A stretch of 64,000 bases of DNA from Auanema rhodensis (Eukaryota > Animalia > Nematoda): assembly GCA_964057225.1 (NCBI GenBank), contig CAXKVF010000076.1, forward strand, positions 372,001 to 436,000. The letters run 5' to 3'. Position 1 is the stretch's first letter. Every line of letters begins with the position of its first letter. The position numbers and the translations under genes are program-made. The notes under the pieces were generated by a model that was not told where the DNA came from, ran no database searches, and saw only the letters and a list, made by a program, of their open reading frames with translations. Shown in pieces: positions 51,001-64,000 of the stretch.

Positions 51001-52469
51001 TCACGTGAAGCGAGTTACATACCAAGTGCACATCACGTGTACATTTAATTAGCATAAATTAAAGTTCACGTAAATTTCAAAGTCATGGTTAACATGAAGC
51101 AATATCAATAAAAATTTGTTTTTAGACTAATATGGACATGGGGAATCTAATTTTGAAAACCGCATCTCTTTATCTTTCACGTGAAGCGAGTTACATACCA
51201 AGTGCACATCACGTGTACATTTAATTAGCATAAATTAAAGTTCACGTAAATTTCAAAGTCATGGTTACCATGAACCAATATCAATCAAAATTTGTTTTTA
51301 GACTAATATGGACATGGGGAATCTAATTTTGAAAACCGCATCTCTTTATCTTTCACGTGAAGCGAGTTACATACCAAGTGCATATCACGTGTACATTTAA
51401 TTAGCATGAATTAAAGTTCACGTAAATTTCAAAGTCATGGTTACCATGCACCAATATCAATAAAAATTTGTTTTTAGACTAATATGGACATGGGGAATCT
51501 AATTTTGAAAACCGCATCTCTTTATCTTTCACGTGAAGCGAGTTACATACCAAGTGCACATCACGTGTACATTTAATTAGCATAAATTAAAGTTCACGTA
51601 AATTTCAAAGTCTTGGTTACCATGAAGCAATATCAATAAAAATTTGTTTTTAGACTAATATGGACATGGGGAATCTAATTTTGAAAACCGCATCTCTTTA
51701 TCTTTCACGTGAAGCAAGTTACATACCAAGTGCACATCACGTGTACATTTAATTAGCATAAATTAAAGTTCACGTAAATTTCAAAGTCATGGTTACCATG
51801 AACCAATATCAATAAAAATTTGTTTTTAGACTAATATGGACATGGGGAATCTAATTTTGAAAACCGCATCTCTTTATCTTTCACGTGAAGCGAGTTACAT
51901 ACCAAGTGCACATCACGTGTACATTTAATTAGCATAAATTAAAGTTCACGTAAATTTCAAAGTCATGGTTACCATGAAGCAATATCAATAAAAATTCGTT
52001 TTTAGACTAATATGGACATGGGGAATCTAATTTTGAAAACCGCATCTCTTTATCTTTCACGTGAAGCGAGTTACATACCAAGTGCACATCACGTGTACAT
52101 TTAATTAGCATAAATTAAAGTTCACGTAAATTTCAAAGTCATGGTTACCATGAAGCAATATCAATAAAAATTTGTTTTTAGACTAATATGGACATGGGGA
52201 ATCTAATTTTGAAAACCGCATCTCTTTATCTTTCACGTGAAGCGAGTTACATACCAAGTGCACATCACGTGTACATTTAATTAGCATAAATTAAAGTTCA
52301 CGTAAATTTCAAAGTCATGGTTACCATGAACCAATATCAATCAAAATTTGTTTTTAGACTAATATGGACATGGGGAATCTAATTTTGAAAACCGCATCTC
52401 TTTATCTTTCACGTGAAGCGAGTTACATACCAAGTGCACATCACGTGTACATTTAATTAGCATAAATTA
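1..52469. repeat. 176-bp tandem satellite array, left arm (about 298 monomers, open at window start)
   Basis: TGTACATTTAATTAGCATAAATTAAAGTTCACG recurs at 1, 177, 353 ... 881 (5x176). Monomers differ by only a few recurrent substitutions, share one orientation, are AT-rich and carry no ORFs in the track. Confidence 0.99.
52466..52469 (+). other. Left copy of apparent short target-site duplication/microhomology ATTA (right copy 58009-58012)
   Basis: Empty site is CATAA-ATTA-AAGTTC. Left junction CATAA-ATTA-tttat, right junction gtgtg-ATTA-AAGTTC. The true length is ambiguous (0-4 bp) because TTA fits the tail phase and A58009 fits the 21-mer. Confidence 0.65.
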
Positions 52470-52487
52470 TTTATTTATTTATTTATT
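52470..52487 (-). repeat. 3' simple-repeat tail AA(TAAA)4 of the LINE
   Basis: Plus strand tttatttatttatttatt abuts the satellite. Short tandem-repeat tails instead of poly(A) are typical of CR1-group elements; the tail also contains AATAAA. Confidence 0.9.
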
Positions 52488-52980
52488 CGTTCTATATCAC
52501 AGATTCTTGATAATCAAAAGCTTATTGTGAACGTAGGTATACTGCGAAAAAGCATCTTACAATATGAACTGGGGAAAGTAAATTAAAAATTACAATCAGA
52601 AAAATTAGAAAAAGGATGAAAGTGGTAAATAGTTGTATAATAGAATAGACTAGAATACAAGAAATATAACAAAACGATATTGAAGCATATGAGATTCTAT
52701 TACTATTTCTCAGCAGTTTGTGAAAACAAAAACAGATTATGTTCAGCAAAGTTTGATGAACTGACTCTTTAAATATAGCTGATCAGGTGCGGTGGAACTC
52801 AGAAATGAGTCAAGCCCGTTCTAATAGCAAAGAGAAAAACTGTTACTCATTGCTACGACTGATGTTGATACAGTATAGATGACAGTAGCAGTCTGGCAGA
52901 AAAAAAAAGTAAGAAAAGAACCTTGTATGTTAATTGAAAAGAAAACGATGATACAGATTAAAAAAAAAAAAAAATAATGG
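52488..52980 (-). other. LINE 3' UTR (about 490 bp, U-rich)
   Basis: Non-satellite sequence between the RT stop (52981) and the tail, with long sense-strand T runs. Confidence 0.85.
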
Positions 52981-54859
52981 TCACGATAAAATATGAGACA
53001 AGATATGTTTCCGGAAAGAATGTTTTGTACGAAGGCTGACTATGGCTTCAGGAAGAGAGTTCCATAGATTTACAGTTCTGTATTCAATTCCATTCCTTGT
53101 TTCTGTCCTCCATAGAGTAGGATGAGCTAGATTCCATTGGTGTCTGCGCAGAGAATTCAGATTCTTGATAATGAAAAAAGATTGTGAGTTTCCTGTGGCT
53201 TCTATTGTTATATGAGCAAAATAGAACAATAGATCAGAAAGAACCCTCCTAGTTATCAGATCTTCAGTTTCAAGATAAGATAGCTGATCTTTGTAAGTTA
53301 GGTCAAGACCGGCTCGGCCAAAGATTGCTTTAAAAAACTTTTTCTGAACTTTTTCTATTCGTTGTTTGCCTGCAATGTTCTGTGGTGACCAGATAACTGA
53401 TCCATATTCAAGTATGGGTCGGACGTAACAGCTGAAAAGTTTGAACAATAATTTAGGACATTTAGAGTAGAAACAACGGAGAATAGTTCGGCATTTGACG
53501 GCCGCAATACTACAAATTGAATTAATGTGTTTTTCGAAAGACAAGTTATTTTCCGTCCAAATACCCAGATCTTTGTATGCAGATACTATAGAGAGAGATG
53601 AATCGCCAAAAGTGAAATTATTAATGTTGTGATAATTAGATGATTTGTTAGAGACAATCATTACTTTAGATTTTTCGGTGTTGACTTTCATTTTGTTATC
53701 ATGACACCATTTGTAAAGAGAATTAAGAGCATTTTGAAGGCTCTCAGGGTTACAACTATGAAGTTTTAGATCATCAGCATATAAAATGGGATGAACATCG
53801 GATGTGAATAAGGAAGTTATGTCGTTTATGTAAAACAGAAACAGTAGAGGGCCAAGAACCGTTCCTTGAGGAACCCCACATGTAAGACTAACAGGGTCGG
53901 ATAGACTTTTGTTGATGAGTACAGAGTAAGAACGGTTTTGGATAAAAGATCCAAGAAAATTAAGAAGAGACCCACGAATTCCAATAGATTTCAATTTTGC
54001 AAAGAGAATGGAGTGATCAATGAGATCGAATGCTTTTGAGAAATCAATAAACGCAACAAAAACTGTATTTTTATCATCAATAAGTGATCTCCATTTGATA
54101 TGGCTGGAAACAAGGGCTGTTACAGTGCTGCGTTTAGGAAGAAAAGCGTGCTGAACATTGGAAATGCTGCCCGAGGATACACCAAAATGAAGAAGGGGAG
54201 ATCGAATAAGTCGTTCAAAGACTTTAGATAAACTTGGGGTTAGTGAGATTGGACGGTAATTAGAAGGATCAGAAGGGTTGCCTTTCTTGAAAACCGGACG
54301 TATCCAAGCTGTTTTCCAGTCAGGAGGACAAGAAGAAGAAACAAGGAGGTTATGAAAAATAAACGAGAGAGGATTGCAGAGGGTGCCTGCACATTGTTTG
54401 AGAAAGTAGTACGGAATTCCATCCGGAGAAGTAGATGCGCGCGAAGGAAGGTGAGAAAGAATGTTGAAAACCTTTTCAGGGGAGATGTCGATGAAGTCAA
54501 TGACTGATGGAGAGTAATTGAGAAGATGAGAGTAAGTGGAAGATGAAGAGGGTTTGACAGCAAAGACGGAGGAAAAAATTTCAGCTTTGTCTACGTCAGA
54601 GAAAACCAAAGTTTCGTTGATTTGTAGAGTAGGGATATCAGAAGAGTCTTTACCAAGTCGTTCGCGACAGAATTGAAAAAATGCTTTTGAATTGTTGGTA
54701 GAAGCTATGTTGTTTTCATCAATGGCAGATTTGAGTTTGATGAGTTTATCTAAGGTGACAGATAGCTTTTTGCGAAGAAGCTCATCCTGAGCGAAAAGAG
54801 AGTTGCTTAACCGGTTAACACGATTGTTAAGTTTCTGAATGTCACGATCAAGTTTTTTT
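52981..54859 (-). CDS. ORF2 C-terminal part: non-LTR reverse transcriptase plus CR1-type C-terminal domain (continues the endonuclease frame across a 1-nt frameshift)
   Basis: SPDGIP, W.TA.I.PVFKKG, NYRPISLT, QHAF, FIDFSKAFD, GVPQGTVLGPLLF, YADD, KDLGI, YVRPILEY, WSP and WNSLP, with no internal stops. The track start at 54888 is a GTG. Confidence 0.96.
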
Positions 54860-55801
54860 TCTTTTCTTTGCCTTTTTGAATGGGACACAGCTTTGAATTA
54901 TTGATTGGACAATTGCAATAAACTTAGAATAGGAAGTTATAGCGTTTAGACCACATAATTCAGTAGCGAAGTCAATGCCAGCTAAAAGGCTATTTATTTT
55001 ACCATAATCGGCCGAGAAAAAGTTACGACTAGAAAAAGAGGAAGAGAGAGAAGAGGGCCTGGAAGTAGCAACTTTGTTGATTTGAGCAAATGTGAGAGGA
55101 TCCAAAATAATGTTAAAGAAAACCGAGTAATGATCAGATTGGCCAAGAGGGCTATTGCGAGAAATGTTCTCTACACAGTGAACACTGTTGGTGATAATGT
55201 AATCCAAGATGTTTTTACCTCTGGTTGGGAAAGTAACTAATTGACTGGATGAAGACTGTTGAAGAAAGTTGAGAATAGATGAAGTAGAGGGGGAACTGCT
55301 TGACGAATGGATGAGATCCCAGTCAATGTGAGGGAAATTAAGATCGCCTGTTAAGAAAAACCTGCGGTTCGAGATAAGAGTTTGAAATTCGGTTAGAAAA
55401 AAAAGAAAGTCAGAGTGCTGAGATGATGGAGAACGATAGCAGATTGAGAAAACGACGTCAGAAGGTATAATGAGAACATTGAGGTATTGAACAGTTGATT
55501 GAGAAGGAGAGCATGAGAGAAGACGACTATTAATGTGTTTTTTAATATAGAGGAGGACTCCTCCTCCTCGAGAAGTTGATCTGTCATCACGGAAAATGCA
55601 GTAAGAATCTCTCAAAGGAAGGGAGCTAGAGTTGAAATCAGGAAACAGCCAGGTCTCAGATATAGCAATAATGTCTGGACTGAGAGTCGAATGAACAATT
55701 GGTATTAAGTGTAATTTATTGACAATAGATCGTGCGTTATAACAAGAGACTGTAATTTTACTACATGCAGCAGTAGAGATTGTTGATTGGAAATTAACGA
55801 A
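54848..55801 (-). CDS. ORF2 N-terminal part: APE-type (EEP fold) endonuclease plus linker; no AUG, start inferred at the +1 frameshift site
   Basis: Catalytic motifs YNARS, DIIAISETWL, DR..RGGGVLLY, YRSP, GDLNFP..DW, PTRGKNILD and SDH are all present. The track start at 55861 is TTG and the frame contains no Met. Confidence 0.92.
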   Translation of the reverse strand, partial: FVNFQSTISTAACSKITVSCYNARSIVNKLHLIPIVHSTLSPDIIAISETWLFPDFNSSSLPLRDSYCIFRDDRSTSRGGGVLLYIKKHINSRLLSCSPSQSTVQYLNVLIIPSDVVFSICYRSPSSQHSDFLFFLTEFQTLISNRRFFLTGDLNFPHIDWDLIHSSSSSPSTSSILNFLQQSSSSQLVTFPTRGKNILDYIITNSVHCVENISRNSPLGQSDHYSVFFNIILDPLTFAQINKVATSRPSSLSSSFSSRNFFSADYGKINSLLAGIDFATELCGLNAITSYSKFIAIVQSIIQSCVPFKKAKKRKKT

Positions 55802-55805
55802 AGGA
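55794..55805 (-). promoter_or_regulatory. Putative programmed +1 ribosomal frameshift site TCC_TTT_CGT_TAA at the ORF1/ORF2 junction
   Basis: Plus strand ttaacgaaagga; in the ORF1 frame it reads UCC UUU CGU UAA, an in-frame match to the PA-X motif. The +1 frame (TTC GTT AAT TTC CAA = FVNFQ) is the endonuclease ORF. Confidence 0.75.
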
Positions 55806-56873
55806 TGTTTGGCTGGGCAGATTGGACGGGGAATTAGGCAAAGTAGATGTATTTCTAACAATGTTAGCAGTAGGATCTGGAACAGATTTAGCTCGGCGAG
55901 AAGGGTTTTTTCTTCTTCTTTGGCTGCTACATCTTTCTTTGTTTATTGGAGCGGGCTGTCCCTTAGTTATAGGCCGGCCTCTTCTACCAGATTTAGACGG
56001 GGGACTAGAATCAAGGTCATGCGTAAAAATAGGCATGTCAGACATTGGAGCAATGCATGAATTGGTAGTTTCAGAGTCCAAGCCTGTAGGGGAAACAACA
56101 TATTTAGCACTGGATGTGTCTTTTGGGGCAGTGCCTGTGTTGGTGAGTCTACGAGGTACTTTTATAAGCTTTAGATCTCGAACAAGAAAAATGAATTCAG
56201 TGTCGTCAGAGTTTTTGCTTTTGGCTTCGTCACGAAGCCGTTTTTCTAGTTCCACCTCAAAGGGTAGATAATCACGACGAACAAATGTTTTGGATAGTGA
56301 GTTGGAAATTTTAGGTTTGTGAGATCTTATAGCTGCTATAACAGTATCTCGAATACTGACCGAAGGACACGTTATGATAAGTGGACCAGGGGACCCTGAT
56401 TTGAGGGTGCAGCGAGTAACGAATATGTGATTGGAATTGAGTAAAGAAATAAGACTAGTATCACTGCAGCTATCAAAAACAAGTTTGAGAAGAGAACGGG
56501 CATCGCTAGGCAGATCAGGTGACGTGACTGGAACCCGGAACCAGAGAGCTCTCAAGGAACGGTGAGCAAATTTAGATTCTTCTAACCTAATTTTATTCAC
56601 TTCAGTTATAACAGTATTTGAACACGGAAGTGTAGGCAATATGCAAGCACTTTCGTTACCCATGAAAGCAGTGAACTTATTTTCTAAAGCGTTGAGTCTT
56701 GAGTTGAACTCAGTTTCAATTACTTTCAAACGAGATTCATGCAATGCGATACAGTTTTTGATACTATGCAGGTCGCTTTTGATTTCTAGAGAAAAACTTG
56801 AGAAAGTGGAATGAAGAGATTCCGTGAGAGATTTCAGAGAAGCAGTAAGAAACTCGGGAGTGACTGTAGACAT
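55794..56873 (-). CDS. LINE ORF1 protein (359 aa, MSTVTPEF...QTSFR): coiled coil, RRM-like/CTD region, basic disordered tail
   Basis: First ATG after the pyrimidine tract is at 56873. Heptad-like segment IKSDLHSIKNCIALHESRLKVIETEFNSRLNALENKF; PGPLIITCPSVSIRDTVI and FVRRDYLPFEVELEKRLRDEAKSKN...VRDLKLI resemble ORF1p RRM/CTD motifs of invertebrate CR1-like elements; position directly upstream of the endonuclease. The track's 81-aa Phe-rich extension to 57116 uses a non-ATG start and translates UTR. Confidence 0.85.
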   Translation of the reverse strand: MSTVTPEFLTASLKSLTESLHSTFSSFSLEIKSDLHSIKNCIALHESRLKVIETEFNSRLNALENKFTAFMGNESACILPTLPCSNTVITEVNKIRLEESKFAHRSLRALWFRVPVTSPDLPSDARSLLKLVFDSCSDTSLISLLNSNHIFVTRCTLKSGSPGPLIITCPSVSIRDTVIAAIRSHKPKISNSLSKTFVRRDYLPFEVELEKRLRDEAKSKNSDDTEFIFLVRDLKLIKVPRRLTNTGTAPKDTSSAKYVVSPTGLDSETTNSCIAPMSDMPIFTHDLDSSPPSKSGRRGRPITKGQPAPINKERCSSQRRRKNPSRRAKSVPDPTANIVRNTSTLPNSPSNLPSQTSFR

Positions 56874-57168
56874 AATGACAGAGCGTAAAAAGTAAGGAAA
56901 GAAAAAATAAAGATAAAGGAAATGATAAAAAGAAGAAAAATAAAAAGAAGAAAGAAAGGAAAAAAGAAGATATAGAGAGGATATGAAAAAGAAAAGAAAG
57001 AGAAGAGAGAGAAAAATGAAAGAAAAAAAGAAAAAGGAAATAAATGAATACGGAAAAAAAGAAAAAGAAAAAAGAAGAAAAAAGTACCTTACTAAAACCA
57101 ATCCGGCGTAAAACAAGAGTAGACTTCGGTTGCGGCGGGGTTGGAGCAGTAGGGAGACAACCGACCAC
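56874..57168 (-). other. LINE 5' UTR: about 85 bp of mixed/GC-richer sequence followed by a T/C-rich tract of about 200 bp
   Basis: Plus strand 56887-57083 is almost entirely A/G; it lies between the 21-bp array and the ORF1 ATG. Confidence 0.8.
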
Positions 57169-58008
57169 GAGGAGTCGAAAATGTAGTGTGAGGAGTCGAA
57201 AATGTAGTGTGAGGAGTCGAAAATGTAGTGTGAGGAGTCGAAAATGTAGTGTGAGGAGTCGAAAATGTAGTGTGAGGAGTCGAAAATGTAGTGTGAGGAG
57301 TCGAAAATGTAGTGTGAGGAGTCGAAAATGTAGTGTGAGGAGTCGAAAATGTAGTGTGAGGAGTCGAAAATGTAGTGTGAGGAGTCGAAAATGTAGTGTG
57401 AGGAGTCGAAAATGTAGTGTGAGGAGTCGAAAATGTAGTGTGAGGAGTCGAAAATGTAGTGTGAGGAGTCGAAAATGTAGTGTGAGGAGTCGAAAATGTA
57501 GTGTGGGAGTCGAAAATGTAGTGTGAGGAGTCGAAAATGTAGTGTGAGGAGTCGAAAATGTAGTGTGAGGAGTCGAAAATGTAGTGTGAGGAGTCGAAAA
57601 TGTAGTGTGAGGAGTCGAAAATGTAGTGTGAGGAGTCGAAAATGTAGTGTGAGGAGTCGAAAATGTAGTGTGAGGAGTCGAAAATGTAGTGTGAGGAGTC
57701 GAAAATGTAGTGTGAGGAGTCGAAAATGTAGTGTGAGGAGTCGAAAATGTAGTGTGAGGAGTCGAAAATGTAGTGTGAGGAGTCGAAAATGTAGTGTGAG
57801 GAGTCGAAAATGTAGTGTGAGGAGTCGAAAATGTAGTGTGAGGAGTCGAAAATGTAGTGTGAGGAGTCGAAAATGTAGTGTGAGGAGTCGAAAATGTAGT
57901 GTGAGGAGTCGAAAATGTAGTGTGTGGAGTCGAAAATGTAGTGTGAGGAGTCGAAAATGTAGTGTGAGGAGTCGAAAATGTAGTGTGAGGAGTCGAAAAT
58001 GTAGTGTG
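57169..58008 (-). repeat. 21-bp minisatellite, 40 copies, forming the 5' end of the LINE (plus strand GAGGAGTCGAAAATGTAGTGT; sense CACACTACATTTTCGACTCCT)
   Basis: 57169-58007 is 839 bp = 40x21 minus 1. The only deviations seen are a 1-bp deletion near 57506 and an A>T at 57925. Confidence 0.98.
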
Positions 58009-61000
58009 ATTAAAGTTCACGTAAATTTCAAAGTCATGGTTACCATGAAGCAATATCAATAAAAATTTGTTTTTAGACTAATATGGACATGGGGAATCTA
58101 ATTTTGAAAACCGCATCTCTTTATCTTTCACGTGAAGCGAGTTACATACCAAGTGCATATCACGTGTACATTTAATTAGCATGAATTAAAGTTCACGTAA
58201 ATTTCAAAGTCATGGTTACCATGCACCAATATCAATAAAAATTTGTTTTTAGACTAATATGGACATGGGGAATCTAATTTTGAAAACCGCATCTCTTTAT
58301 CTTTCACGTGAAGCGAGTTACATACCAAGTGCACATCACGTGTACATTTAATTAGCATAAATTAAAGTTCACGTAAATTTCAAAGTCATGGTTACCATGC
58401 ACCAATATCAATAAAAATTTGTTTTTAGACTAATATGGACATGGGGAATCTAATTTTGAAAACCTCATCTCTTTATCTTTCACGTGAAGCGAGTTACATA
58501 CCAAGTGCACATCACGTGTACATTTAATTAGCATAAATTAAAGTTCACGTAAATTTCAAAGTCATGGTTACCATGCACCAATATCAATAAAAATTTGTTT
58601 TTAGACTAATATGGACATGGGGAATCTAATTTTGAAAACCGCATCTCTTTATCTTTCACGTGAAGCGAGTTACATACCAAGTGCACATCACGTGTACATT
58701 TAATTAGCATAAATTAAAGTTCACGTAAATTTCAAAGTCATGGTTACCATGCACCAATATCAATAAAAATTTGTTTTTAGACTAATATGGACATGGGGAA
58801 TCTAATTTTGAAAACCGCATCTCTTTATCTTTCACGTGAAGCGAGTTACATACCAAGTGCACATCACGTTTACATTTAATTAGCATAAATTGAAGTTCAC
58901 GTAAATTTCAAAGTCATGGTTACCATGAACCAATATCAATAAAAATTTGTTTTTAGACTAATATGGACATGGGGAATCTAATTTTGAAAACCGCATCTCT
59001 TTATCTTTCACGTGAAGCGAGTTACATACCAAGTGCACATCACGTGTACATTTAATTAGCATAAATTAAAGTTCACGTAAATTTCAAAGTCATGGTTACC
59101 ATGAACCAATACCCAATCAAAATTTGTTTTTAGACTAATATGGACATGGGGAATCTAATTTTGAAAACCGCATCTCTTTATCTTTCACGTGAAGCGAGTT
59201 ACATACCAAGTGCACATCACGTGTACATTTAATTAGCATAAATTAAAGTTCACGTAAATTTCAAAGTCATGGTTACCATGAAGCAATATCAATAAAAATT
59301 TGTTTTTAGACTAATATGGACATGGGGAATCTAATTTTGAAAACTGCATCTCTTTATCTTTCACGTGAAGCGAGTTACATACCAAGTGCACATCACGTGT
59401 ACATTTAATTAGCATAAATTAAAGTTCACGTAAATTTCAAAGTCTTGGTTACCATGAAGCAATATCAATAAAAATTTGTTTTTAGACTAATATGGACATG
59501 GGGAATCTAATTTTGAAAACCGCATCTCTTTATCTTTCACGTGAAGCGAGTTACATACCAAGTGCACATCACGTGTACATTTAATTAGCATAAATTAAAG
59601 TTCACGTAAATTTCAAAGTCATGGTTACCATGAACCAATACCCAATCAAAATTTGTTTTTAGACTAATATGGACATGGGGAATCTAATTTTGAAAACCGC
59701 ATCTCTTTATCTTTCACGTGAAGCGAGTTACATACCAAGTGCACATCACGTGTACATTTAATTAGCATAAATTAAAGTTCACGTAAATTTCAAAGTCATG
59801 GTTACCATGAAGCAATATCAATAAAAATTTGTTTTTAGACTAATATGGACATGGGGAATCTAATTTTGAAAACCGCATCTCTTTATCTTTCACGTGAAGC
59901 GAGTTACATACCAAGTGCATATCACGTGTACATTTAATTAGCATGAATTAAAGTTCACGTAAATTTCAAAGTCATGGTTACCATGCACCAATATCAATAA
60001 AAATTTGTTTTTAGACTAATATGGACATGGGGAATCTAATTTTGAGAACCGCATCTCTTTATCTTTCACGTGAAGCGAGTTACATACCAAGTGCATATCA
60101 CGTGTACATTTAATTAGCATGAATTAAAGTTCACGTAAATTTCAAAGTCATGGTTACCATGCACCAATATCAATAAAAATTTGTTTTTAGACTAATATGG
60201 ACATGGGGAATCTAATTTTGAAAACCGCATCTCTTTATCTTTCACGTGAAGCGAGTTACATACCAAGTGCACATCACGTGTACATTTAATTAGCATAAAT
60301 TAAAGTTCACGTAAATTTCAAAGTCATGGTTACCATGCACCAATATCAATAAAAATTTGTTTTTAGACTAATATGGACATGGGGAATCTAATTTTGAAAA
60401 CCGCATCTCTTTATCTTTCACGTGAAGCGAGTTACATACCAAGTGCACATCACGTGTACATTTAATTAGCATAAATCAAAGTTCACGTAAATTTCAAAGT
60501 CATGGTTACCATGCACCAATATCAATAAAAAGTTGTTTTTAGACTAATATGGACATGGGGAATCTAATTTTGAAAACCGCATCTCTTTATCTTTCACGTG
60601 AAGCGAGTTACATACCAAGTGCACATCACGTGTACATTTAATTAGCATAAATTAAAGTTCACGTAAATTTCAAAGTCATGGTTACCATGCACCAATATCA
60701 ATAAAAATTTGTTTTTAGACTAATATGGACATGGGGAATCTAATTTTGAAAACCGCATCTCTTTATCTTTCACGTGAAGCGAGTTACATACCAAGTGCAC
60801 ATCACGTGTACATTTAATTAGCATAAATTAAAGTTCACGTAAATTTCAAAGTCATGGTTACCATAAACCAATATCAATAAAAATATGTTTTTAGACTAAT
60901 ATGGACATGGGGAATCTAATTTTGAAAACCGCATCTCTTTATCTTTCACGTGAAGCGAGTTACATACCAAGTGCACATCACGTGTACATTTAATTAGCAT

Positions 61001-64000
61001 AAATTAAAGTTCACGTAAATTTCAAAGTCATGGTTACCATGAAGCAATATCAATAAAAATTTGTTTTTAGACTAATATGGACATGGGGAATCTAATTTTG
61101 AAAACCGCATCTCTTTATCTTTCACGTGAAGCGAGTTACATACCAAGTGCACATCACGTGTACATTTAATTAGCATAAATTAAAGTTCACGTAAATTTCA
61201 AAGTCATGGTTACCATGAAGCAATATCAATAAAAATTTGTTTTTAGACTAATATGGACATGGGGAATCTAATTTTGAAAACCGCATCTCTTTATCTTTCA
61301 CGTGAAGCGAGTTACATACCAAGTGCACATCACGTGTACATTTAATTAGCATAAATTAAAGTTCACGTAAATTTCAAAGTCATGGTTACCATGAACCAAT
61401 ATCAATAAAAATTTGTTTTTAGACTAATATGGACATGGGGAATCTAATTTTGAAAACCGCATCTCTTTATCTTTCACGTGAAGCGAGTTACATACCAAGT
61501 GCACATCACGTGTACATTTAATTAGCATAAATTAAAGTTCACGTAAATTTCAAAGTCATGGTTACCATGAAGCAATATCAATAAAAATTCGTTTTTAGAC
61601 TAATATGGACATGGGGAATCTAATTTTGAAAACCGCATCTCTTTATCTTTCACGTGAAGCGAGTTACATACCAAGTGCACATCACGTGTACATTTAATTA
61701 GCATAAATTAAAGTTCACGTAAATTTCAAAGTCATGGTTACCATGAAGCAATATCAATAAAAATTTGTTTTTAGACTAATATGGACATGGGGAATCTAAT
61801 TTTGAAAACCGCATCTCTTTATCTTTCACGTGAAGCGAGTTACATACCAAGTGCACATCACGTGTACATTTAATTAGCATAAATTAAAGTTCACGTAAAT
61901 TTCAAAGTCATGGTTACCATGAACCAATATCAATCAAAATTCGTTTTTAGACTAATATGGACATAGGGAATCTAATTTTGAAAACCGCATCTCTTTATCT
62001 TTCACGTGAAGCGAGTTACATACCAAGTGCACATCACGTGTACATTTAATTAGCATAAATTAAAGTTCACGTAAATTTCAAAGTCATGGTTACCATGAAG
62101 CAATATCAATAAAAATTTGTTTTTAGACTAATATGGACATGGGGAATCTAATTTTGAAAACCGCATCTCTTTATCTTTCACGTGAAGCGAGTTACATACC
62201 AAGTGCACATCACGTGTACATTTAATTAGCATGAATTAAAGTTCACGTAAATTTCAAAGTCATGGTTACCATGCACCAATATCAATAAAAATTTGTTTTT
62301 AGACTAATATGGACATGGGGAATCTAATTTTGAAAACCGCATCTCTTTATCTTTCACGTGAAGCGAGTTACATACCAAGTGCACATCACGTGTACATTTA
62401 ATTAGCATAAATTAAAGTTCACGTAAATTTCAAAGTCATGGTTACCATGCACCAATATCAATAAAAATTTGTTTTTAGACTAATATGGACATGGGGAATC
62501 TAATTTTGAAAACCGCATCTCTTTATCTTTCACGTGAAGCGAGTTACATACCAAGTGCACATCACGTGTACATTTAATTAGCATAAATTAAAGTTCACGT
62601 AAATTTCAAAGTCATGGTTACCATGCACCAATATCAATAAAAAGTTGTTTTTAGACTAATATGGACATGGGGAATCTAATTTTGAAAACCGCATCTCTTT
62701 ATCTTTCACGTGAAGCGAGTTACATACCAAGTGCACATCACGTGTACATTTAATTAGCATAAATTAAAGTTCACGTAAATTTCAAAGTCATGGTTACCAT
62801 GCACCAATATCAATAAAAATTTGTTTTTAGACTAATATGGACATGGGGAATCTAATTTTGAAAACCGCATCTCTTTATCTTTCACGTGAGCGAGTTACAT
62901 ACCAAGTGCACATCACGTGTACATTTAATTAGCATAAATTAAAGTTCACGTAAATTTCAAAGTCATGGTTACCATGCACCAATATCAATAAAAAGTTGTT
63001 TTTAGACTAATATGGACATGGGGAATCTAATTTTGAAAACCGCATCTCTTTATCTTTCACGTGAAGCGAGTTACATACCAAGTGCACATCACGTGTACAT
63101 TTAATTAGCATAAATTAAAGTTCACGTAAATTTCAAAGTCATGGTTACCATGCACCAATATCAATAAAAATTTGTTTTTAGACTAATATGGACATGGGGA
63201 ATCTAATTTTGAAAACCGCATCTCTTTATCTTTCACGTGAAGCGAGTTACATACCAAGTGCACATCACGTGTACATTTAATTAGCATGAATTAAAGTTCA
63301 CGTAAATTTCAAAGTCATGGTTACCATAAACCAATATCAATAAAAAGTTGTTTTTAGACTAATATGGACATGGGGAATCTAATTTTGAAAACCGCATCTC
63401 TTTATCTTTCACGTGAAGCGAGTTACATACCAAGTGCACATCACGTGTACATTTAATTAGCATAAATTAAAGTTCACGTAAATTTCAAAGTCATGGTTAC
63501 CATGCACCAATATCAATAAAAATTTGTTTTTAGACTAATATGGACATGGGGAATCTAATTTTGAAAACCGCATCTCTTTATCTTTCACGTGAAGCGAGTT
63601 ACATACCAAGTGCACATCACGTGTACATTTAATTAGCATAAATTAAAGTTCACGTAAATTTCAAAGTCATGGTTACCATAAACCAATATCAATAAAAATT
63701 TGTTTTTAAACTAATATGGACATGGGGAATCTAATTTTGAAAACCGCATCTCTTTATCTTTCACGTGAAGCGAGTTACATACCAAGTGCACATCACGTGT
63801 ACATTTAATTAGCATGAATTAAAGTTCACGTAAATTTCAAAGTCATGGTTACCATGCACCAATATCAATAAAAATTTGTTTTTAGACTAATATGGACATG
63901 GGGAATCTAATTTTGAAAACCGCATCTCTTTATCTTTCACGTGAAGCGAGTTACATACCAAGTGCACATCACGTGTACATTTAATTAGCATAAATTAAAG
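58009..64000. repeat. 176-bp tandem satellite array, right arm (about 34 monomers, open at window end)
   Basis: The same monomer resumes at ATTAAAGTTCACG (58009) in the same orientation and at the monomer phase where the left arm stopped. Confidence 0.99.

Follow-up and report, generated by a model that had tools for sequence, protein, structure and literature searches.

Template jumping by reverse transcriptases (RTs) of the type used by long interspersed nuclear elements (LINEs) has been well studied in vitro, and its role in vivo has been inferred mostly from single junction bases. The Bombyx R2 RT requires untemplated addition for template switching (PMC8857657). The group II intron RT switches through one base pair between a 1-nt overhang and the 3′ base of the acceptor, with 97.5 to 99.7% of junctions precise (PMC8363836), and RTs of the non-LTR type (LTR, long terminal repeat) make serial end-to-end switches on acceptors of 21 to 24 nt (PMC8363836, PMC8857657). 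Here we describe a LINE in a 64-kb stretch of nematode DNA (the window, meaning the whole stretch analyzed) whose 5′ end consists of 40 tandem copies of the first 21 nt of its own RNA. Based on comparison with related copies elsewhere in the genome, we consider it most likely, with a probability of roughly 0.6, that such arrays arise de novo at integration through serial template switching and are not inherited.

On this reading the arrays would resemble the products of template-jumping RTs in several respects: a switch at the template 5′ end by way of one untemplated base, mostly precise junctions, errors confined to the joints, and repeated use of acceptors of about 21 to 24 nt (PMC8857657, PMC8363836). 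They would differ in that the LINE case is inferred in vivo, during integration, with a product fixed in the genome, and in that the arrays re-use the element's own short stretch of RNA up to 76 times in a fixed register. Like this LINE, the R1 and R2 elements have a fixed 3′ junction and variable 5′ junctions with untemplated bases and microhomology, and their duplicated pieces fall in the same size class (16 to 27 nt), but the piece duplicated by R1/R2 is target DNA and single, and multi-unit arrays of element sequence are not described there (PMC2718515). The defense RT DRT2 makes concatemeric cDNA from a non-coding RNA, and the repeat junction creates a promoter (PMC12039810). Common to both cases would be that one template region is recopied into a tandem array and that the joint reconstitutes a promoter element (here initiator [Inr]-like, as predicted); DRT2, however, is prokaryotic, uses a structured dedicated RNA with a unit on the scale of 100 nt, and makes extrachromosomal DNA, and the comparison is an analogy only, without sequence relationship.

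Telomerase is likewise an RT, and it extends DNA 3′ ends with many tandem copies of a short RNA template. The LINE arrays, in contrast, involve no dedicated RNA and an alignment of no more than about 1 nt, their unit of 18 to 22 nt varies by event, and their product lies at a transposon junction rather than a chromosome end. Mouse L1 elements also carry a variable number of tandem repeats upstream of a unique 5′ untranslated region (UTR), but L1 monomers are about 200 bp long, each is a promoter, and they are inherited via transcripts that start upstream, whereas the units described here are 18 to 22 nt, appear to be re-made at each insertion, and have promoter-like geometry at the last joint only. 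At the other end of the RNA, RT slippage at initiation produces the 3′ microsatellite tails of CR1/L2-type elements and the I factor's (TAA)n tail. This too is reiterative copying by a LINE RT at one RNA end, and the window LINE itself has a (TAAA)n tail, but that slippage is 3′, has units of 3 to 8 nt, and is guided by base pairing, whereas the arrays are 5′ with units of 18 to 22 nt. A literature search of partial coverage found no published LINE 5′ arrays of this kind; as far as it shows, the de novo production of short LINE 5′ arrays through serial template switching is apparently undescribed. The genome record presented below would preserve up to 76 successive switches per insertion together with their register, a joint error of about 6%, and the pairing base, and it suggests a specific way in which tandem repeats could come to stand at LINE 5′ ends, a question still without an answer for mouse L1.

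Arrays in the window and at related copies

Tandem Repeats Finder (TRF) recognized three arrays in the window: two blocks of a 176-bp satellite and, between them, a 21-nt repeat at 57169-58009 (period 21, 40.1 copies, 99% matches, score 1668). Scanning the 64 kb with the 21-mer at up to 3 mismatches gave exactly 40 sites, all contiguous at 57170-58008 on the minus strand and none elsewhere; shuffled sequence gave an expectation of 0. The array forms the 5′ end of a 5.5-kb non-LTR retrotransposon with APE and RT domains, which lies on the minus strand between the satellite blocks. The features that delimit the array and the insertion are as follows.

1-52469, plus strand: 176-bp satellite, left flank (TRF period 176, 298 copies); the AT-1 autosomal-terminal repeat
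52466-52469 (left) and 58009-58012 (right): target-site duplication ATTA, 4 bp (flanks mapped to monomer positions 24 and 21)
52470-52487, minus strand: 3′ tail (TAAA)n, 18 nt (read from the sequence)
57086-57169, minus strand: unique 5′ UTR, 84 nt, alignable with sister family B and containing GGTTG at 57158-57162, which resembles a downstream promoter element (DPE)
57170-58008, minus strand: 40-unit 21-nt array, the first 21 nt of the element RNA (TRF and pattern scan)
58009-64000, plus strand: 176-bp satellite, right flank (TRF, 34 copies)

Thirty-eight of the 40 units are perfect and head-to-tail. Unit 17, counted from the inner end (57505-57525), lacks its final base, and the last base of unit 37 (57925-57945) is changed from T to A. 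The innermost unit runs without a break into the unique 5′ UTR, every joint reads T-C-A and recreates an Inr-like TCACACT, and the 21-mer has no match in the 176-bp monomer. The satellite breaks off at 52469 (monomer position 24) and restarts at 58009 (position 21), giving a 4-bp duplication that encloses both the (TAAA)n tail and the array. An earlier note on this DNA had described a near-perfect 40-fold array with just two deviations, continuous with the UTR, inside the insertion and unrelated to the satellite monomer, and this description holds in full.

To place the array among its relatives, we searched the genome assembly (180.9 Mb, 112 contigs) with the 3′ end of the element, which returned nine copies of its family (family A) at 98 to 100% identity, and with the 5′ UTR, which returned eight full-length 5′ ends at 99 to 100% identity. 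All eight share the same canonical sequence into the UTR, and their differences start upstream of it:

Window copy (C83:429k): 21-nt unit, 40 copies
C83:211k: another, phase-shifted 21-nt unit, 13 copies
C80:34k: 18-nt unit, 39 copies
C4:6.05M: 18-nt unit, 24 copies
C84:487k and its duplicate C80:589k: 18-nt unit, 4 copies each
C3:12.36M (in non-satellite DNA): 18-nt unit, 3 copies
C87:151k: 22-nt unit, 2 copies, beside a 24-nt repeat, 2 copies, from an inverted UTR piece

The insertions at C84 near 487000 and C80 near 589000, on two small contigs, are one and the same, with the same 4 units and near-identical satellite flanks, and reflect a segmental duplication or the assembly of both haplotypes as separate copies. 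The ninth copy (C4 near 11455400) is truncated within open reading frame 2 (ORF2) and carries no array; beside it, in unique DNA (L048:3667-3776), lies a 30-bp repeat of 3.7 copies with CAGCTG in its units, unrelated to the LINE. The earlier note had proposed counting the 21-mer at every family copy: arrays stand at all eight full-length ends, but the unit is not constantly 21 nt (18 to 22 nt). Since similar arrays are present at seven further loci, an assembly artefact that inflated a short repeat, which the earlier note had named as the finding's possible undoing, has a negligible chance of accounting for the window array. The eight loci show distinct registers, singleton errors and clean junctions; the assembly is described as built from PacBio HiFi and Hi-C data (bioRxiv 10.64898/2026.08.27.747507), and 840 bp is well within one read.

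Four family A copies (the window copy, C83:211k, C80:34k and C4:6.05M) have zero substitutions over the 4,341 nt compared in each, and a single homopolymer length is the sole difference there. Since these four lack any substitution, family A looks very recently active. The same four nonetheless carry three array registers and four different unit counts, with the window copy in a 21-nt register and most sisters in an 18-nt register, which argues for arrays made de novo; were whole arrays inherited, each copy would require a separate and equally young source. A combination of inheritance with slippage would relax this requirement: the RNA would carry at least two units, the cDNA end would slip back one unit, and rare new registers would spread by descent. 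Homology would then account for the fixed register, 18-nt arrays are indeed common to five copies, and the RNA behind C83:211k had part of a second unit. Two of the four sequence-identical copies, however, have private registers (21 nt and phase-shifted 21 nt), no two-unit intermediates of those registers occur in the genome, and the window copy and C4:6.05M share a run of eight A's (A8) in ORF2 yet differ in register. We therefore regard inheritance with slippage as improbable.

De novo formation is also suggested by the phase of the individual units; among the sister copies, units of 16, 18, 19, 21 and 22 nt occur. In the window copy, the unit corresponds to the opening 21 nt of an RNA whose start lies one base ahead of the canonical A. 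At C83:211k it corresponds to the opening 21 nt of an RNA that starts at base 7 of the second-last 18-nt unit, which is exactly where the array begins at its outer end. At C87 the element is missing its first 5 nt, and the 22 nt that then come first, as in a cDNA that stopped 5 nt short, are present twice. The repeated stretch thus appears in each case to be set by the end point of that particular template. We also considered a variant template for an "extra ATC" unit at C83:211k, which is unneeded when the array is phased from its outer end. The 18-mer occurs 115 times in the genome, compared with 0 for the reversed control; among the 100 of these 115 matches listed with locations, all lie at known LINE 5′ loci, and none belongs to a free array or a chromosome-end array, which gives no encouragement to the idea that the unit seeds a new satellite.

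A sister family, family B, is about 69% identical to family A in the same region and has a like architecture with a different sequence. Its arrays repeat family B's own first 18 to 19 nt, with 76, 15, 8.6, 2, 1 and 1 units at six 5′ ends. The longest array seen, at L036:55-1430 (C4 near 449500), is built of 76 units of 18 nt. At the exact truncation point of a 5′-truncated family B copy (L066:1939-1993) lies a 24-nt inverted repeat, 96% complementary around a 7-nt loop, whose appearance suggests that the cDNA end snapped back and was copied.

Errors at unit joints and proposed serial template switching

If each joint marks a template switch, errors should gather there. When units are set out from an initial CA to a final T, the 8 internal deviant units of family A all have their changes in the closing 1 to 2 bases and nowhere else (four T to A, one T to C, and three deletions of 1 to 2 nt), and the same is true of both deviant units in the family B arrays L034 and L033. 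No interior change was found in about 222 units. Confinement of this kind has an estimated chance of 1e-9 to 4e-7; for ten events to share a single 2-nt stretch of the unit, it is about 1e-9 once the choice of stretch has been allowed for. Errors number 8 over 2,245 nt of array, while the 17,364 nt of element body contain 0 (Fisher p = 3e-8), and the error rate per joint of 8/123 (about 6%) is somewhat above in vitro figures for template switching (PMC8363836). Errors restricted in this way would fit synthesis that crosses a template switch at every joint.

The same pattern speaks against later mutation, replication slippage or unequal exchange, and with them against minisatellite expansion after insertion, one of the origins offered in the earlier note. 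Expansion could draw on the runs of C/T joint variants in the 76-unit family B array, which resemble exchange products, and on the lower unit numbers of older copies, by which arrays may also shrink. Later mutation, however, would strike any base; copies free of any substitution bear arrays of 13 to 40 units; the part that is repeated is the extreme 5′ end every time, and this in two families of unlike sequence; and the duplicated locus C84:487k/C80:589k retained the same 4 units. Expansion after insertion is unneeded, is at odds with joint-only errors, and seems to us very improbable.

The earlier note had also suggested recopying or template jumping on the 5′-terminal 21 nt or so, and it is this option that the register differences and joint-only errors favor. 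The anatomy of the arrays, the differences from copy to copy and the positions of the errors are observed; the acting polymerase, the strand that is extended and the RNA fragment introduced below are what we infer from them. The element RNA would start at, or within about a dozen bases of, the Inr-like TCA, and first-strand cDNA would reach the RNA 5′ end. There a polymerase, most likely the element's own RT, would add one untemplated base, which would pair 18 to 22 nt inside the RNA end, and the terminal stretch would be copied again. Between 2 and 76 such cycles would follow, all in one register, until the strand is joined to the target. The T-C-A joint can be read in two ways: the RNA may begin with C, in which case an untemplated A of the cDNA would pair with a U 18 to 22 nt in, or it may begin with A, in which case an untemplated G would pair with a C at 18 to 22 nt.

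The fixed register would follow if the re-used template were a physical 5′-terminal RNA fragment with a free 3′ end, perhaps what survives once degradation has removed the remainder of the hybrid's RNA. In the group II intron RT structure, the acceptor 3′ end sits in a pocket that a continuous template would fill (PMC8363836). Such a pocket, together with one register kept for up to 40 to 76 cycles, leads us to favor a fragment. Realignment on CTC repeats as a general rule for the register fits the 18- and 21-nt units and fails for the phase-shifted 21-nt and the 22-nt units. No telomerase-like alignment region was found at the joints, where the overlap is at most 1 to 3 nt.

Several observations weigh against serial switching as described. 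Serial jumps that landed freely should mix 18- and 21-nt units, whereas each array keeps a single register, and the fragment invoked to account for this constancy is conjectural. Making it would also require a host enzyme, since the element has no detectable RNase H domain. In the 76-unit array at L036, the joint base alternates between C and T in non-random runs near the outer end only, and all twelve variant units are changed at the first base. Five 5′-truncated copies that we inspected carry no array, and the short arrays of older family A copies (2 to 4 units) may reflect some change after insertion. Finally, the inverted 24-nt repeat, present twice, at C87 and the snap-back at L066 were copied from DNA and not from an RNA 5′ end, and a host repair polymerase would fit both cases as well.

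Satellite-borne family A copies always have their 3′ junction at monomer position 24, in antisense orientation (five independent insertions and one duplicate); because two of the nine copies sit in other DNA, outside the satellite, this targeting is a preference and not an absolute rule. The (TAAA)n tail is 18 to 30 nt long and differs in every family A copy, including the four otherwise identical ones, a variation that is the familiar sign of RT stuttering at initiation and adds to the case for serial switching. The 5′ junctions of the satellite-borne copies vary: duplications (4, 5, 6 or 21 bp), deletions (33 and 89 bp) and filler sequence (12 and 20 nt) all occur. The 89-bp target deletion belongs to the composite 5′ junction of C87 (L028:1413-1504, near 151000), which consists of a 24-nt tandem repeat (2 copies) of inverted UTR sequence from 115 to 130 nt away, followed by the 22-nt unit (2 copies). 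In family B the 3′ junction is constant, before TGTACA of the monomer at a CACGTG site (twelve loci, sense orientation), and most 5′ junctions lie within 3 nt of that CACGTG site.

Flank-templated inserts with 1-nt homology are a signature of theta-mediated end joining in the Caenorhabditis elegans germline. The arrays could accordingly have been made at integration by host repair of the polymerase-theta type or by second-strand priming, in which the target end anneals by one base, copies about 20 nt and repeats the process, an explanation that departs from serial switching by the element's RT in enzyme and strand only. The C87 junction, with templated pieces in both orientations, 115 to 130 nt away and each doubled, is what such repair might leave, as are the 24-nt snap-back with its 7-nt loop on the truncated family B copy and a 20-nt satellite-derived filler at the C84 copy. 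Dozens of cycles in a fixed register, however, are not described for that pathway, the arrays occur only on related LINE families among the loci read, and non-LTR RTs too copy DNA and snap back. We consider a host polymerase unlikely to be the source of the arrays.

A bolder form of the RT-based reading is that the LINE RT acts in vivo as a processive repeat-addition enzyme, which would retain the last 18 to 22 nt of RNA as a reusable template, add tens of copies in a register set by one base pair, and produce an array that rebuilds the initiator. We put this forward tentatively, as somewhat more likely to be wrong than right. It would show, in a living organism, a retrotransposon enzyme performing repeat addition, with a bearing on how telomerase may have arisen; if true, it would represent a natural halfway stage between retrotransposon RT and telomerase, and a general birth route for LINE 5′ monomers and some minisatellites.

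Promoter-like motifs at the last joint

Many insect LINEs use a promoter that combines an initiator with a downstream promoter element. Taking the A of the joint as +1 (57189 in the window), family A reads TCACACT at -2 to +5 and GGTTG at +28 to +32 (57158-57162), and family B reads TCATTCC and GGTCG at the same positions. The motifs of both families fit the Inr and DPE consensus, as defined in insect LINEs, which may not be the consensus of this nematode. Because the family A and family B 5′ ends are alignable, the shared spacing is by descent. From this geometry we infer a promoter function. A transcript that starts at +1 loses positions -3 to -1, which one extra unit restores, and with them it may restore the promoter; this suggests how an internally promoted element regains the bases just upstream of its start site. 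Under such a model, units past the first extra one add nothing, and 40 of them look like run-on synthesis rather than 40 promoters, because only the innermost unit is spaced for the DPE-like motif and copy number is unconstrained.

This bears on the earlier proposal of a tandem promoter, in which monomers would be selected as in mouse L1 and their number kept for expression. One part of that proposal stands, in that the last joint rebuilds an Inr-like TCA; a TCA is found at every joint, and the DPE-like motif at +28 to +32 is present in both families. The outer units, however, have no motif at +28, the downstream motif being properly spaced for the innermost unit only. Arrays run from 2 to 76 units, no copy number is favored within the span of 1 to 76 found over all 5′ ends, identical copies have unlike registers, and the units are ten times shorter than L1 monomers. 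Selected promoter monomers thus have a very slim chance of being the explanation, slimmer even than expansion after insertion. The correspondence of 21 bp to two helical turns, to which the earlier note had pointed, carries no weight, as most sister copies use 18 nt. The more speculative link to nematode 21U RNAs also finds no support: the unit length varies from 18 to 22 nt, the unit on the element strand begins with C or A and not with a 5′ U, and the Ruby core motif CTGTTTCA is absent across the whole 64-kb window.

Two RNA-level candidates for the 5′ end were tried and rejected. An Rfam search at E values up to 1 gave zero matches to a ribozyme or other known RNA in 52400-58100, and a conserved fold in the first ~100 nt of families A and B amounts to a weak consensus of -4 kcal/mol with one compensatory pair.

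Satellite host and anatomy of the element

AT-1 is an eliminated autosomal-terminal repeat of Auanema rhodense, whose germline genome of 180 Mb loses about 61% from somatic cells; the eliminated DNA is mostly tandem repeats of 167 to 504 nt (bioRxiv 10.64898/2026.08.27.747507). The AT-1 fluorescence in situ hybridization probe printed in that preprint has 287 exact matches in the window, and because the probe matches the window satellite exactly, the DNA that hosts the LINE is germline-restricted satellite of A. rhodense or a very close relative. LINE 5′ arrays did not turn up in term searches of this preprint, which covers the satellites and their elimination. Since the family resides in DNA that the soma of a culturable nematode discards, these ideas can be tested at the bench.

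Downstream of the array and the unique 5′ UTR, the element contains the following parts.

56874-57085, minus strand: pyrimidine-rich, low-complexity part of the 5′ UTR (degenerate short-period TRF rows)
55794-56873, minus strand: ORF1, 359 aa, no known domain (ORF list)
54848-55861, minus strand: APE-type endonuclease part of ORF2 (Pfam Exo_endo_phos, 2.3e-13; Exo_endo_phos_2, 5.5e-10)
54853-54860, minus strand: A8 run in ORF2, which shifts the endonuclease and RT parts into different frames
52981-54888, minus strand: RT part of ORF2 (Pfam RVT_1, E 5.7e-34)

With an RT domain, an endonuclease N-terminal to it, a 3′ tail, a target-site duplication and no LTRs, the element has the features of an APE-type LINE. 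ORF1 has zero Pfam matches even at an E value of 10, and a Pfam search at the same threshold found no RNase H domain in ORF2. A homology search with the RT returned 5,152 homologues, of which the top ones are from nematodes at 31 to 38% identity. The microsatellite tail alone hints at membership in the CR1/L2 clade. Homologous proteins that combine endonuclease and RT align to the window element across two frames, and the A8 run is found in the window copy and C4:6.05M, whereas six sister copies have A7; the extra base may reflect genuine slippage or an assembly error in a homopolymer. ORF1 and the endonuclease reading frame share 68 nt (55794-55861) in different frames.

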